Of a stretch of DNA of 64,000 bases, positions 7,980-16,791 are shown piece by piece; position 1 is the first letter of the stretch; each line of letters opens with the position of its first letter. The DNA is taken from contig NW_003314305.1 of assembly GCF_000143415.4 (NCBI RefSeq), positions 309,709 through 373,708 on the forward strand, written 5' to 3'. The notes under the pieces are model-generated. The model was not told the origin of the DNA. It saw nothing but the letters and a program-made list of their open reading frames with translations, and searched no databases. The DNA is from Selaginella moellendorffii. Lineage: Eukaryota > Plantae > Lycopodiophyta. Made by a program: the position numbers and the translations under genes.

Positions 7980-8516
7980 TCATGGCTTGAAGCATTCCCA
8001 GAGCCTCAGCAGATGAGCTTCGTAGACTGCAATGTTCCCACCAGGTTCAGATCCAACTGAGCTTGTTAATGCGTAGCCCTGAACGTTCCTGAACTCTCCT
8101 GTGCCCCCAACAATAGCGATTTCCCTTTGAGACTCAGTGAATGGGTTCTGACCATGGAACACTATTGTACCTTTCCGCCCTTCCAGCTCCACCGTCATGC
8201 TCTGGAGAAAGCTGCTGCTGCTCAGTGAATCTAACACCAGAAAACCCTTGGCTCTTCCCACAAGCTTGGAGTTGATCGGGGACTCTTTAGTCAGCTTGTC
8301 ATCTATGATCGCAACCTGACCAAACAACGTTTCGTTGTTGAGAGGAGGCAGGACGACTGCTGAAGTCCGATTGCTCCCGGTGAACTGGTCGTGCAAGTAG
8401 AACCGGATCACCTCGGTGCACTTTGATAGATCCAATCTTCCCGGCTTTGGGAAGCTCGATTCTGCAGGAGCAATTGCAAAAACCAGAGCTAGAACGAGTG
8501 AAATGAAGATCTTCAT
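7980..8516 (-). CDS. Dirigent (DIR) protein, secreted, single exon
   Basis: Signal peptide MKIFISLVLALVFAIAPAES. Dirigent motifs FYLHD, FGQVAIIDDKLT, VGRAKG, REIAIVGGTGEFRNVQGYA. Confidence 0.95.
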   Translation of the reverse strand: MKIFISLVLALVFAIAPAESSFPKPGRLDLSKCTEVIRFYLHDQFTGSNRTSAVVLPPLNNETLFGQVAIIDDKLTKESPINSKLVGRAKGFLVLDSLSSSSFLQSMTVELEGRKGTIVFHGQNPFTESQREIAIVGGTGEFRNVQGYALTSSVGSEPGGNIAVYEAHLLRLWECFKP

Positions 8517-10322: not shown

Positions 10323-10502
10323 TCCCTGCAACGATTCCAGACGTGGACAGGGGATGTACTTGCTAAAGGTGGTCTCGAGTTGGAGTATTTCGTCGCAAAC
10401 ACGCTAATCTCAAGAAATGCCAAGTAGGAGACGAGCAAATGAAAGTCAGGCCTCGACTCCACCAAGTACATTCCCTGTCCACGTCTGGAATCGTTGCAGG
10501 GA
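10323..10502. repeat. 40-bp inverted repeat / hairpin (candidate small-RNA precursor)
   Basis: 10323-10362 is the reverse complement of 10463-10502 at 39/40 positions. The mismatch is a G:U pair on the + strand RNA. Confidence 0.8.
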
Positions 10503-10977
10503 CTATAAGGGTTCATAGTCTTCGAAAACCAACTAGGCAGCAAAAAGGGATTCGTTTTCACGTGTTAGAATCGGCCGTGGAAGCTCAATCGTCTCGTGCG
10601 GGAGCAGCAGCCGGTTTACAACCGAGCGAGTCCTCAAACCATAAGAGGCGTTCCTCCTCCCGCAATGGTGTAGTCAAAGGAGTTCCATTTGAGCTGGTTC
10701 GCTCTTCGGCGTGAGGACAAACCTCGATTCTGGACTGATTGCTGGATAACAAGAAAACAATTGAGCTACAACTCAAAAAAAAAAAAAATTGATTTAAATC
10801 TGTTGACAACGCTCAAAAAGATGAAATCTAGCCAGAAAAATTCCTTGCCACTCCTTTACCTGAGATTTTTCTTGCTGTCGAGTTCTTACAGGGTTTTTTA
10901 TTTCAAGGTTTGGGTGAGCCGCCAGATATCCTGCTCCTCATCTCTAACCAAACTGTGATAAACTTTCGCTTTCATCG

Positions 10978-13103
10978 CTATTTATTCGTCTTGCCACTAT
11001 AGATGCTGCTCTTGATAGTGATGATCGCCAGGTCTCGCAACTCCCACTTATCAAACTGTAGACGATATGTGCCACCCTCGCCTTTCACTACACACTGCGC
11101 CAGGCTGCTCTCCAGTGGTGCCACTTCCACGGAAAAACCTCCATTGTAGGGCTCCCAGATGGTACAACTGCACATCCTGCGGTTGCTCAGCTTCACTCCG
11201 GTCTGAGTGATCACTAGCTTTCCCTTCCAGGACTTCTCATCATCTTCGAAAACTTTCACCGCGAAGTGTGTACTCCGCTGCTTGTAGAAATCGTCACAGT
11301 CGACAGATCCACCGTAGCCAGCAAACGCCCCGCAAGTCGTGGTGGTGCTGTGCTCTTTGCTGTCCACGCTGATGCAAACCAGCTCGATGCTGGAGTCGTA
11401 GTCGCAACCCGTGATCACGTACTCTGGAGATTTGTCTCCAGAGCTTATCTCCATCGCTGGCAACAGCCGCACTGTCTTGCCATTGCTCTGGTGACGAACC
11501 CAGTAGCAAATCGACCACTCGGTGTCAGTCACAAAGCTCCCCTGTCCCGTGAGTTTTTCCCCGACGAGAAGCTTTCCCTTGACAATGATCCTCGCGTCCG
11601 GCATGCAGTAGACACCCCCAGTGAGAAGCTGTCCCTTGAGCCTCCACAGCCGCGTGCATATATGCTCGAAAGTTGGCCGCCGGCGAGGCTGTGAATCCCA
11701 GCAGTAGGCGATGGTGTCCTTGAGAGCTTGAGGACAGCGTTGCGGAAGCCTGGGTCTCAAGCCACGTCGAATCTCATCGAGCAAAGCCTTCTTGGTTAGG
11801 CCGAGAGGATATGGTGGCGTCCCGGTGAGGATCTCGGCAAACATCATCCCGTAGCTGTAAACGTCGACGCTTAAATCGTACTGGCTCTTCATCTCCCAGT
11901 CCCCCTCGAGCATCTCTGGAGCCATGTAGAGAACCGTTCCTTTCAAGTGGCTGTGATAATGGTTGCTTGAAAAGTTCATCTTGGAGAGCCCAAAATCCGC
12001 CACCTTTGCGACGATGTTGTGAGCCGATCCATCCTCAAACTTGCCGTCAAAGTTTACGAGGACGTTCCCCGGCTTGAGATCCCTGTGAATGATCTTCTTC
12101 TTGTGCACGAAATCCATTCCCTGTGCGATCTGGAGCATGATCTCCACGATCAGGATGATTGGAGCAGTGACGAGGCTTGGAATGAGCCGAGCGAGGCTTC
12201 CTTGCATGAGCTCCATGACGAGATAAGCTTTGTTATCTTTCTCCGACCAGCCGAGGATTTGGAGCACCGATGGATGGCACGGCCTGAGCTTCACCATGAT
12301 CTCTCCCTGAAAAGAAACAAGGGAACAAAAAACCATCACCAGCTATAAGTCAAAGAATGGAAAGATTGGCATACCTCCCACGGATCTTGCGACCATAGCT
12401 CCTTTGAAAACTTCTTCACTGCCACTGTGTGACCAGCCCAAGTTGTCTGGAACACTAATCCAAACGAGCCTTGTCCCAGAGGCTTCGTATCGTCAAGCTC
12501 GAGCTCTGATGGATCAATCCAATCCATTGTACTTGCCGCCGATGGCGAGCCCGACGATCGCAGCATGTTGGTGGCCACTGAGGAGCCACCCCGAGCACTT
12601 CCCAAAATCTCTAGCAGTTTGGTCTTGTCCTCGCTAGCACTGATCCTCAGCCCACACCTCAGCGCCTTGGAATTCTCCCAGCTCGTCCTTCTCAACACCC
12701 CAATCCAATCCTTGGTCCCGGAAGAACAATCCCTGTCCTGGAGCAATGCCGCCATGACGAGGTCCACATGGATCGCCAAATCGTCGAGCAGCGCCTCGAA
12801 AACCACCACATTCTCGCGAGCCACGTACAGCCATGGCTTCTCTATCCAATCCGGCCCGGAATACTTGGATGCCACGCGCAGCACCGCGAGGAGCGCCTGA
12901 TCGAGCTGCTGGAAGCACGATTGCTGCCTGGCGATGGTGGCCGGCGAGCAGCGCGCGGTCCAGAGATCAATGTGGAGGCGCACGTAGCCGCAAGCCGTGA
13001 GGAGGACGAAGATCTGGCCCTTGTTTACCTGTGCCACCATGGCTACCTCGGAAATATGATCGATCGTCGCGAGGAGAGCGTGGATGATGGATTCTTCCTC
13101 CAT
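10978..13103 (-). CDS. MLKL-like four-helix-bundle + TKL/Raf-like kinase + Ig-like + PH-like fusion protein (about 685 aa; exons 13103-12375 and 12306-10978)
   Basis: GT-AG intron 12307-12374 joins PWE|GEIM in frame. Kinase motifs GQGSFG, VAVKK, HRDLKPGN, DFG, GTVLYMAPE, DVYSYG are all present. N-terminal helical domain has the 'I..I...A..A.VNK' pattern. C-terminal WVRH..G...EYVIT..D and RDL.I.T. patterns are Ig/PH-like. The kinase call is certain; the flanking domains are pattern-based. Confidence 0.85.
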
Positions 13104-13276
13104 GCCCGCCAATCCCAGCGCCAATGCCGTGAAACTAGGGATTTCTTGGCTCCTCTGTGGAAGTCAACGGTACAGTCACCATGAACTTCCTTCGAAAACT
13201 AGGGTCAATTATTTGATTGAGATGAAATAATTTTTTAGGGTTCTATCATAGATTGATAGGGCGCTGGGTGGGAGCG

Positions 13277-16200
13277 ATGGCGCTGCGCGATTTGGTGACT
13301 GGAGCTGGAGGATGCGTCGTCCCAGGCGAGGGCGCCTCGTCCTCTTCGAATCCTCTGGCCAATTTCGCCAGCTCCTTGCTGGGATCGCTGCCAAAAGCTC
13401 AGGTTCGTCGAATCGATATTCACTTCTACAAAGTTTAGGAAGAAAGAAGAGAATAGAGAGAGGAAATAGGCCACATTCTTGTATGTTTAGTTGGAGTGCT
13501 GTCCTCTAAAAAACCTTTCTTTTCAGGAAAGAGTACGTGAGCTTCCAACCATTCCAACTTTCCAAGGCCCTGGACAGCAATTGGAGTATGGGAGCAGCTC
13601 CGCTGCATCACTTCCGGGAACGGAGTTTCAGAATGAAACTCAGGTGGAAAATTTTCAATCTGGAGCTTTACTGAGTTTTCAGTTGCAGCATTCAGAGTTC
13701 ATGCGTGGGTTTCGTGATGCCGAACCGGCTCCTTACGCTGATGCTTGGAACGAAGCTACGCAAAGGGGAGAAGACTTGTCGAGGTTTTCAGAATTCGAGC
13801 GAATCTATGGCCAGAAACCGGGAGGAAACGTTCAGCAGCTACATTACATGGATGGTAAGGTTCGCGTTTTTTTTTTTCTTTTGCGAGCTTTGTTTAATTT
13901 GTGCTTGTAAATCACAGGACCTCCGCAGCATGCTCTATCTGGTTTCCTTCGTTCGTTTTTCGCTAGCAGCAGAACAGAACTTCCTTTTCATGCTGTCCGC
14001 CTGCCTGAGCTCGGATTGTCAGGATTCGACAAGCAACGCATTCGCGATCGTAGTAGTATCATGGCTAGGCATTTCTTTGCCGATAAAGGGGAAGAGTATG
14101 TCAATGCGCAGGTACATATAAGCTCTGAATTCTTTGCTCTCATATCTCATAGTTCTAATATTTATTTTCAGGTTAATGCTTTCTTGGAATCTTTGGATAT
14201 AGAAGATGGCGTTCGAGAAGTTCGAGAACCTTCCAATAGAGCGTTTTCTGAGATGGAAAATTATTGGGGCAACACCAACCATGGTAAACATGAGGAATGG
14301 GTGCAAGATTTCCATCAACAATATCCTCAGAAGAATTACTGGGCTGAAGAGTTTCAATCACAACATGATGCTGACGGCTGGGCGGCGCAGTTCAGTGAGG
14401 TGGTATCTTTCTCTCGATGTTTTTTTGTTTTTGTTTTGTAACATTTGTTCTTCGAACTTTCAGCAGCAACAGTCTCTGCCTGCTAGGCACGCTGATTTCA
14501 GAAACGTCAGCTCTTTAGAACAAACTCAGTCTCTTGTGGACACGCTGTCCAAAAATGAAGATCCAAAGTTCCAAGTAAGCTTTTATTCTTGCATCTTTCT
14601 GGCACTGAAAATCATGTCTTACAGAATTCAAAGTTTTTGCACTTTGTGTCGCGAATGAGTCGCGGTGAATTGATTGTAGAAGACAATCAAGTGAAGGAGA
14701 ACGCTGTTCCCAATGCCTGGGCTCAAGAGTTCACACAAGTAAACCATCCGGGAAACTGGGCTGCAGAGTTCACTGCTGGCGAGGTTTTATTTTTTCTTAT
14801 ATACGTTTTGTTTTCGAGAGGCTGATCGTGGAAAATGTAGCACGCCAACGCAAACAGCTGGGCTGACGAGTTTGCTCAACAAGAACCTGGTGGAGCCTGG
14901 GCCGAAGAATTTTCCAACAGGACGCAAAAGTGGGCCGACGAATTTCAAGAGCAGGTGGATGATGGTGCGTTCGTGTCAGAGGACTGGCAAGAAAGTTACG
15001 ATAAGTAAGGCTAAATGTCGTCCTTTTTGTAGAGCTAACGCTGTTTTCCAGGTTCGTGGAGGAACAACTTAGAGGGGAACAAAGTCGTTCCGCGTCCTCA
15101 AAGTGGACATACGTTTTTGCTGACCAGAATCCATATGTCGGCCACCCGAATCCCCTCAAGGAAGGCCAAGAGCTGTTCAGGAAGGGCCTGCTCAGCGAAG
15201 CTGTGCTTGCTCTGGAAGCGGAAGTGATAAAAAATCCAGAGAATGCCGAGGGATGGCGATTGCTAGGGATTACTCATGCTGAAAATGATGACGATCGTCA
15301 GGTGAGTCTTTTATTTTTATTTCCTTTTAATTTTGTTGTGAACCTCTATTTCTCTTTGCTAGGCAATCGCATCGATGGTTCGAGCAAGAGACGCAGACCC
15401 CACCAATCTGGAGGTTTTGTTAGCTCTTGGCGTTAGTCATACTAATGGTAACGTGACCTCAGCTGCCCTCGTTCTTATAGTGTTGATTTTCTTTTAGAAT
15501 TGGAGCAGCCTGAAGCCTTGAGATATCTAAGAGGCTGGCTTCAACACCATCCAAAGTATGGAATACTTGTGCCTCAAGAGAATGCCGAAAGTCTCACGCA
15601 ATCGGACGTAAGTTTTTGCAATTGAACTGTAACCCCAAACTCTTTGAAATCCTTCAGGTTGCCCGATTGTTTAACGAGGCAGCAGCAATGGCACCAGAAG
15701 ATGGTGACGTCCACACCGTCTTGGGTGTTCTCTACAACCTCTCTCGGGAATACTCCAACGCGATACAGTCCTTCGAGACAGCTCTCAAGCTAAAACCCCG
15801 TGATTATTCCCTGTGGAACAAGCTAGGAGCTACGCAGGCCAACAGCGCACGAAGCTCCGACGCGATATATGCCTACCAAGAGGTGATAGTTTCTCTCTGC
15901 TGCTTGTGCATTCTTTTCTAACTCATTGGAAATTTTCCAGGCGCTAAATCTAAAGCCAAACTATGTGCGCGCGTGGTCTAACATGGGAATTGGCTACGCG
16001 AATCAAGTAATTTTTTATCTTCTTTTCTAGATGATAGATAAAGAGACAAATCTTGTGCAGGCCCAGTACCAGGAATCCATTCGCTACTACGTCCGAGCCT
16101 TGTGCATGAATCCCAAAGCCGACAACGCTTGGCAGTACCTTAGAATGTCACTCAGGTTCGTGTCTATTCTATCCTCGGGTTTGCAGCGCTTTGATCTCAC

Positions 16201-16308
16201 GCGATTGGTGTCGACCTTCGTTGTTGTGCCAGTGCCACCAGGACAGATCTTCTCGACGCCTGTGACAAGCGTGACTTGGAAACATTGCAAGCGGAGTTTC
16301 CTCTGTAA
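13277..16308 (+). CDS. PEX5: Peroxisomal targeting signal 1 receptor PEX5 (multi-exon)
   Basis: MALRDLVTGAGGC N-terminus, multiple WxxxF/Y pentapeptides (WAEEF, WAQEF, WADEF), TPR region GLLSEAVLALEAEV, LWNKLGATQANS, YVRAWSNMG, and C-terminal EFPL*. Confidence 0.97.
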
Positions 16309-16791
16309 AAACGACGAAGACAACATTCTTCCTGCGCTTCGATCTAGTCCGTTTCGTGAATAAAACGTGTAAAATCATTCACTTCCAACGTAATTTGAAG
16401 ATCGGCTTCGTCTCACTATCACAAAAAAGGCAGCAACGTCTTTCGATCTCCATGTTTAACCACGTCGTCGAGATAGCTTACCAGACCCTCGCCGGCGTAT
16501 CTCAGGTTCTCTTCTAACTGTGATTACCTAGGTGGATCGATGCAATACCAACAGACAAATAGAAAACCTTGTGCCTATATATCCTACCCGGGCCTTTTAT
16601 AGGTTTTTCTCTTTTATCAGGTCCGAAATATTCACATTGTTCGTGCAAGATCACATCAGTGCCAGCAAGTGTTTAAAACGAGTAACGATACATTTTATTT
16701 GCACCTGGTGCATTGTTTTCTAGCAAAAAAGAACGCCAAGGCATTAGAGCGCAATGCTATCAAGGAAACCAAGGAAGAGATCGACCATACC

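Follow-up and report, generated by a model that had tools for sequence, protein, structure and literature searches.

Arabidopsis MLKL1-3 (AtMLKL1-3) combine a helical bundle with a pseudokinase, and plant MLKLs terminate in a Ser-rich stretch of no known fold (bioRxiv 10.1101/681015). In the grasses, many MLKL_NTD-kinase and DUF1221-kinase proteins are found, and in Pm13 none of the catalytic residues is lost (PMC10951266). R3AK causes cell death through its four-helix bundle (4HB) and becomes auto-active upon perturbation of its kinase active site (bioRxiv 10.64898/2026.08.07.743466). A survey of the partners of the MCAfunc domain reported its association with a kinase in monocots and in a moss, and in none of the 17 MCAfunc proteins of the lycophyte Selaginella moellendorffii (PMC8049495). 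For the Ig-PH domain of SCAB1, a phosphoinositide site of atypical nature has been described (PMC10730221). Here we report on a gene located at positions 10978-13103, on the minus strand, of a 64-kb window of the S. moellendorffii genome (contig NW_003314305.1; the window is the whole stretch of DNA that was analysed). This gene is expressed as one spliced transcript and codes for a protein of three parts: a predicted helical head, a protein kinase domain in which no catalytic motif is disrupted, and a C-terminal tail that, to judge from profile comparisons and a structural model, is a fused Ig-PH module.

Gene model, transcription and alleles

From the reading frames of the window, a two-exon gene on the minus strand was deduced that codes for a protein of 685 amino acids, as the initial annotation had proposed. 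Exon 1 comprises 243 codons and starts at 13103 with the first in-frame ATG after a stop. The translations of the two exons, each compared separately, are identical letter for letter to residues 1-243 and 244-685 of the RefSeq protein XP_024541212.1 (Selaginella moellendorffii), which bears no other title than 'probable serine/threonine-protein kinase DDB_G0268876'. The features of the gene and of the protein that it encodes are as follows.

13103-12375, minus strand: exon 1, residues 1-243, coding for the helical N-terminal region, the Ser-rich linker and the kinase N-lobe, and ending just before the alphaC Glu.
12374-12307, minus strand: intron of 68 nucleotides, GT..AG, phase 0.
12306-10978, minus strand: exon 2, residues 244-685, with 442 codons and a TAG stop (10980-10978), coding for the remaining kinase and the Ig-PH module.
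13104-13175 at least, minus strand: 5' untranslated region (contigs extend to 13111, 13138 and 13175).
10900-10977 at least, minus strand: 3' untranslated region (spliced contigs begin at 10900/10901).
12729-13103, minus strand: residues 1-125, candidate HeLo/MLKL-like bundle with long helices at 3-23, 28-49, 54-81 and 96-120 and a short one at 90-93 (low-confidence model).
12591-12713, minus strand: residues 131-171, predicted helices 131-154 and 160-171, which would hold the position of the MLKL brace (low-confidence model).
12516-12590, minus strand: residues 172-196, linker rich in Ser, Gly and Ala (sequence; predicted local distance difference test, pLDDT, 31-35).
11644-12515, minus strand: residues 197-464, protein kinase domain, split by the intron, with all catalytic motifs intact (Pfam).
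11323-11622, minus strand: residues 472-571, predicted beta sandwich, Ig-like and of the AIR9 A9 / SCAB type (sub-threshold Pfam, phmmer, hhalign, model).
10987-11268, minus strand: residues 590-683, predicted PH-like fold of seven strands with a C-terminal helix cap, matching DUF7046 (model, hhalign).

The gene region is present in 20 public runs from 10 studies, and four runs, from four studies, were aligned to the window; these runs are called RNA by guess only. In all four of them, contigs join position 12305 to 12374 and skip exactly the 68-nucleotide intron, whose terminal bases read CT..AC on the plus strand and hence GT..AG on the strand of the gene. A single contig of 2201 nucleotides spans 10900-13111 in spliced form and covers the whole coding region together with parts of both untranslated regions. 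An RNA origin fits the exact removal of the intron, the lack of any contig running over it and the small size of the assemblies (24-57 Mb). Because contigs from four studies skip precisely the predicted intron and one of them covers the full coding region, the two exons are co-transcribed; the initial annotation had made its proposal depend on this point beforehand, and the exact-junction contigs of the four runs agree with it. The architecture and the expression as one spliced transcript are near certain.

The second haplotype carries a copy of the gene, XP_024519842.1, on scaffold GL377567.1. The two copies differ at 24 of 2126 bases and at 13 residues, without any indel; their introns are identical and the frame is open over 685 codons in both, with an overall ratio of nonsynonymous to synonymous differences per site (pN/pS) of 0.34. 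Within the kinase part, 2 nonsynonymous and 6 synonymous differences give a pN/pS of 0.09, and in the head and tail taken together the ratio is about 0.6, from 16 differences only. Eleven of the 13 amino-acid changes thus fall in the head and tail (7 of the 13 in the tail alone) and 2 in the kinase, an excess in the flanks that is not significant given the few differences (Fisher p = 0.08). Three of the four runs contain two alternative contigs of 113 nucleotides at 11135-11247, of which the first equals the window and the second departs from it at 5 positions, so that the same samples, probably of RNA, hold both alleles of this Ig-PH-coding part. No paralogue of any of the three parts was found elsewhere in the 64-kb window. 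The window holds 100 N, presumably one assembly gap, and none of them lies within 10500-13600.

The kinase domain and its Ig-PH tail

Pfam comparison of exon 2 gave matches above the cut-offs to both Pkinase (E 1.8e-42, 146 bits for a cut-off of 31.7) and PK_Tyr_Ser-Thr (E 1.6e-40, 139.5 bits for a cut-off of 23.1), the start of the domain being encoded by exon 1. The initial annotation had listed the catalytic motifs as intact and had placed the alphaC Glu at the splice, and both statements were borne out: GQGSFG lies at residues 210-215, VAVK at 227-230 with the Lys at 230, HRDLKPGN at 317-324, DFG at 347-349 and APE at 372-374, and the alphaC Glu, E245, is the second residue of exon 2. With its catalytic motifs complete, the domain departs from the pseudokinase character of animal MLKL and AtMLKL1-3. 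Among solved structures in the PDB, the nearest kinases are Src, B-Raf and Roco4, all at E values of about 1e-26, and the AtMLKL2 pseudokinase (6lba) follows at 5.7e-26, on a par with B-Raf. Since these proteins score alike, the kinase is placed in the tyrosine kinase/tyrosine kinase-like (TK/TKL-like) part of the kinome and MLKL is not singled out. From its sequence, we assign the domain to the eukaryotic protein kinase superfamily as a TK/TKL-like enzyme of Ser/Thr type that looks competent. It should be noted that the 35 bases at 12058-12092, which code for HRDLKPGN, are matched by contigs of 1.8 kb whose depth is 2-4 times higher and which agree with the window here only and continue into unlike sequence; their source is probably a paralogous kinase of higher expression with the same DNA at this motif.

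The tail comprises about 215 amino acids. On Pfam it matched IG_AIR9 with an E value of 0.0025 and 18 bits, under the cut-off of 27.5, and DUF7046 was not detected in it by Pfam alone. Word-index searches with the tail, and with residues 1-195 of the head, returned the allele only, so that neither flank of the kinase has close relatives. An exhaustive phmmer search of 1.84 billion representative proteins with the tail found, besides the allele, four proteins only (E 1.3e-5 to 3.6e-4), three of which align from query residues 17-20 to 208-209. All four contain IG_AIR9 (PF23197), and DUF7046 (PF23080) was above the cut-off in two of them and sub-threshold in a third. With a profile built from these matches, 115 plant proteins of this type were gathered. 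When the tail was compared by hhalign with an alignment of 27 family sequences from which it was itself absent, a match over 182 columns was obtained (97.8%, E 1.1e-12) at 25% identity, within the 20-25% identity that the tail has to members of the family.

The structural model leads to the same assignment. The AlphaFold model of the tail, computed from a 42-sequence alignment, has a mean pLDDT of 81.9 and a predicted template modelling score (pTM) of 0.79, and presents a beta sandwich at model residues 5-104 and, at 123-216, seven strands that precede a long C-terminal helix, which is the PH topology. Its top matches in Foldseek were the Ig-PH domain of SCAB1 (8y47_A, E 3.3e-8; 4dix_A, E 1.3e-7; about 215 columns), with single PH domains next. 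Using VIA-align, the superposition of the model on the SCAB1 Ig-PH domain gave Z scores of 15.3 and 14.9 over 183-184 residues, and that of its second half (model residues 119-216) on classical PH domains gave Z scores of 12-13 with root-mean-square deviations of 2-3 A. Taken together, these comparisons identify the tail, at the level of sequence, as a fused Ig-PH module and a distant member of the plant IG_AIR9+DUF7046 family, and the model predicts that it folds like the Ig-PH domain of SCAB1. An AIR9/SCAB-type Ig domain followed by a PH-like fold, as first proposed for this C-terminus, thus emerged from phmmer, hhalign, AlphaFold, Foldseek and VIA-align alike.

In the beta1-beta2 region of the PH part, Lys residues are arranged in a K..KxK pattern where the family consensus is acidic or neutral, and this half of the module has a net charge of +3; these residues may be taken as a weak hint of lipid binding.

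The relatives with Ig and DUF7046 domains carry coiled-coil, membrane-spanning or MCAfunc N-termini, and among plant proteins this module is mobile. One of them, P0045 from Miscanthus lutarioriparius, has an MCAfunc bundle (Pfam E 2.4e-28) joined directly to IG_AIR9 and DUF7046, an architecture of which no description was found in the literature searched. Because P0045 pairs MCAfunc with the same Ig+DUF7046 module, a bundle and this tail do co-occur elsewhere. We considered that P0045 might hide a kinase exon and rejected it, as the kinase had no tblastn match in the 23-kb locus, of which the gene occupies 7.5 kb (L002 8001-15465). In Lactuca saligna, residues 1-75 of protein P0019 correspond to the last subdomain of a receptor-like kinase (RLK)-type kinase and precede the IG_AIR9+DUF7046 module; this protein might represent a piece of a eudicot kinase-Ig-PH fusion, or else a chimera of the annotation. 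The literature searched contained no paper on a kinase that carries an Ig-PH (IG_AIR9/DUF7046) tail, nor one on DUF7046 itself. A function is known for the Ig-PH domain pair in SCAB1 alone, and Pfam still lists the pair partly as DUF7046.

The helical head and possible modes of action

In mouse MLKL, the bundle occupies residues 1-125 and the brace extends to about residue 180. The single-sequence AlphaFold model of the Selaginella head has a mean pLDDT of 48 and a pTM of 0.42, and about 180 amino acids of it are predicted to be helical; after the helices listed above, a further one is placed at 174-181, followed by the disordered Ser-rich linker and, from about residue 197, by the kinase. The spacing of these helices resembles that of the mouse MLKL bundle and brace, which we take as a lead only. 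The feature neighbours of the head in the ESM Atlas belong to clusters of MCAfunc, MLKL_N, RPW8, DUF7792 and PUB10_N (scores 0.75-0.81), and nine of the ten best neighbours that bear a family assignment share one clan of plant 4HB/HeLo-like families.

Several observations weigh against a head of this type and against the role that it would imply. The feature scores of 0.75-0.81 are within the range often reached by shuffled proteins. Pfam comparison of the head at E values up to 10 gave noise only (YfcL, NfeD), with no match to PF22215, DUF1221, PF19584 or RPW8, a sequence search of the PDB with the head gave no match, and neither BLASTP nor hhalign matched it to the MCAfunc domain of the Miscanthus protein P0045. 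Searches with the head model, at its pLDDT of 48, by Foldseek (PDB), by VIA-align (48,161 chains) and by shape in the Atlas returned generic helical or G-protein-coupled receptor-like entries with Z scores under 8; coming from so poor a model, these entries do not count as a negative result. Outside S. moellendorffii, word-index searches returned no homologue of the architecture in full. Finally, the genes next to the kinase gene, which code for a tetratricopeptide repeat (TPR) protein and for dirigent proteins, form no obvious immune cluster.

These neighbours are arranged as follows. The TPR gene is transcribed divergently (about 13250-16350, plus strand; in the allelic locus L001 6752-9789, minus strand, 742 amino acids) and starts about 170-210 bp upstream of the kinase ATG. 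As it starts this close and contigs of the kinase gene extend to 13175, the bidirectional promoter region common to both genes must be very short. Downstream of the kinase gene lies a dirigent-like gene (7980-8516, minus strand; Pfam Dirigent E 1.5e-34), and the other haplotype has two dirigent genes (L001 13120-13710 and 15125-15661) with a kinesin-like fragment between them. No linked NLR (nucleotide-binding leucine-rich repeat) or helper gene was found in the 22-kb allelic locus.

The initial annotation had read the first residues as following the MLKL-NTD/MCAfunc four-helix pattern. The letters of this pattern are present and the region is predicted to be helical; a link above chance did not emerge, every sequence and fold test having ended without a match, with the exhaustive HMMER search made for the tail only. 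An MLKL/MCAfunc-type head is suggested by sub-threshold ESM-feature similarity and by helix spacing in a low-confidence model and is neither shown nor excluded, and we consider the chances that the head is a HeLo-type bundle to be about even. We also asked whether the head could be the coiled-coil region of SCAB/Ig-DUF7046 proteins into which a kinase had been inserted, and found no support for this, phmmer against 117 proteins of the family having given no match with E < 1.

If the head is of the HeLo/MLKL type, the protein might work as follows. Residues 1-125 would form the bundle, followed by the brace-like helices 131-171 and by the flexible Ser-rich linker. The Ig-PH tail would direct the protein to a site on a membrane or on the cytoskeleton, or would bind a ligand at such a site. 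The kinase would act as a switch that, by its state of phosphorylation or its nucleotide state, controls the release of the head, which as the output would oligomerise and act on membranes, as in Pm13 and R3AK. A role as an executor of cell death or immunity, and a role of the tail in sensing or lipid targeting, can be proposed from this scheme by inference only. For the statement as a whole, that is, a three-part kinase fusion whose HeLo/MLKL-type head is included and which works like the grass 4HB-kinases Pm13 and R3AK, we hold the probability to be somewhat short of one half.

A substantial share of the probability, though one that stays well under one half, goes to an ordinary signalling kinase of the TKL type, in which a lineage-specific head unrelated to MLKL would regulate or dimerise the enzyme and the tail would target it to the cytoskeleton or a membrane, which is what modules of the AIR9 and SCAB type do in proteins associated with the cytoskeleton, without cell-death output. 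All tests for a HeLo, MLKL or MCAfunc head ended without a match, the catalytic motifs are intact and the neighbourhood is not immune-like; moreover, the Ig-PH family otherwise sits on coiled-coil or membrane-spanning N-termini, and its solved relative SCAB1 binds actin. The head is, however, also unlike the N-termini of the Ig+DUF7046 proteins, its feature neighbours are consistently plant 4HB families and its helix spacing fits a bundle with a brace. A pN/pS of about 0.6 between alleles in the head and tail would also be high for a housekeeping regulator, though it comes from the 16 differences only.

The tail might instead be an integrated bait that mimics a SCAB/AIR9-like cytoskeletal host protein targeted by pathogen effectors, the kinase fusion reporting any tampering with it, possibly with the aid of a helper. 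The concentration of allelic amino-acid changes in the tail (7 of 13) compared to the kinase (2) is in line with such a sensor, and an integrated-domain model of kinase fusion proteins (KFPs) has been published (PMC10951266; 10.64898/2026.08.07.743466). We nevertheless consider a bait improbable, as no NLR or helper gene adjoins the gene, the surplus of changes outside the kinase lacks statistical significance and effectors are not known to target Ig-PH proteins. An artefact of annotation, either two distinct genes or a chimera without function joined in error, has in its favour one point, the lack of homologues of the same layout; it is very improbable and is already refuted by the spliced contigs of four studies, which join the exons at a GT..AG intron and of which one runs over the whole coding region, and both alleles are open over 685 codons at an overall pN/pS of 0.34.

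Should the proposed HeLo-type bundle be a true one, the design of Pm13 and R3AK, a death-type bundle on a live kinase, would reach from the grasses back to the lycophytes; the folded Ig-PH tail could then show how such executors are directed to a membrane or to a bait, and the protein would offer an easy entry into how plant MLKL-like proteins are switched on. It is conceivable, and in our estimation rather unlikely, that the gene belongs to a modular family, specific to lycophytes, of MLKL-like executor kinases with a common helical head and active kinase and with swapped C-terminal domains for sensing or targeting, which would amount to a non-NLR repertoire of integrated-domain immune receptors in an early vascular plant. 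Were the head unrelated to these bundles, the finding would be a smaller one, namely the first kinase observed to carry an Ig-PH module of the SCAB/AIR9 type.

Comparison with known systems

The seed-plant proteins with IG_AIR9 and DUF7046, such as Carica papaya LOC110825950 and maize Zm00001d013890, have the C-terminal module in common with the Selaginella protein, and no complete kinase was found among those examined. SCAB1 (4DIX, 8Y47) contains the same fused Ig and PH domains over about 185 residues, but at 12-14% identity, and there they are preceded by an actin-binding domain and coiled coils (PMC10730221), where the Selaginella protein has a kinase. As Pfam found neither SCAB-ABD nor SCAB_CC in the Selaginella protein, it falls outside the SCAB family proper.

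Arabidopsis MLKL1-3 (6KA4, 6LBA) and animal MLKL present the same order of helical head, brace and kinase fold. Their kinases are pseudokinases, whereas that of Selaginella is intact, and the Ser-rich tail of plant MLKLs contrasts with the folded Ig-PH tail predicted here.

The likeliest working analogy is with Pm13 from Aegilops longissima and R3AK from wheat, which likewise have a helical head, a brace-like linker and a catalytically complete kinase (PMC10951266; 10.64898/2026.08.07.743466). The heads of these two proteins are recognised as MLKL_NTD/4HB by domain databases, in contrast to that of the Selaginella protein. The kinase of Pm13 is of the LRR_8B RLK-derived type, whereas the neighbours of the Selaginella kinase in the PDB are Src, B-Raf and Roco4. 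Both grass proteins end after the kinase, to which the Selaginella protein adds the 215-residue Ig-PH module; with a kinase and a non-kinase integrated domain on one transcript, it has the structural make-up of a plant KFP. The initial annotation had regarded a 4HB on an active kinase as an unusual contrast to known MLKLs, which was overstated in view of the published Pm13 (PMC10951266) and R3AK (10.64898/2026.08.07.743466). A bundle on a live kinase would not be new in kind, because these two grass proteins already have it; what looks new here is that such a kinase bears an Ig-PH tail.

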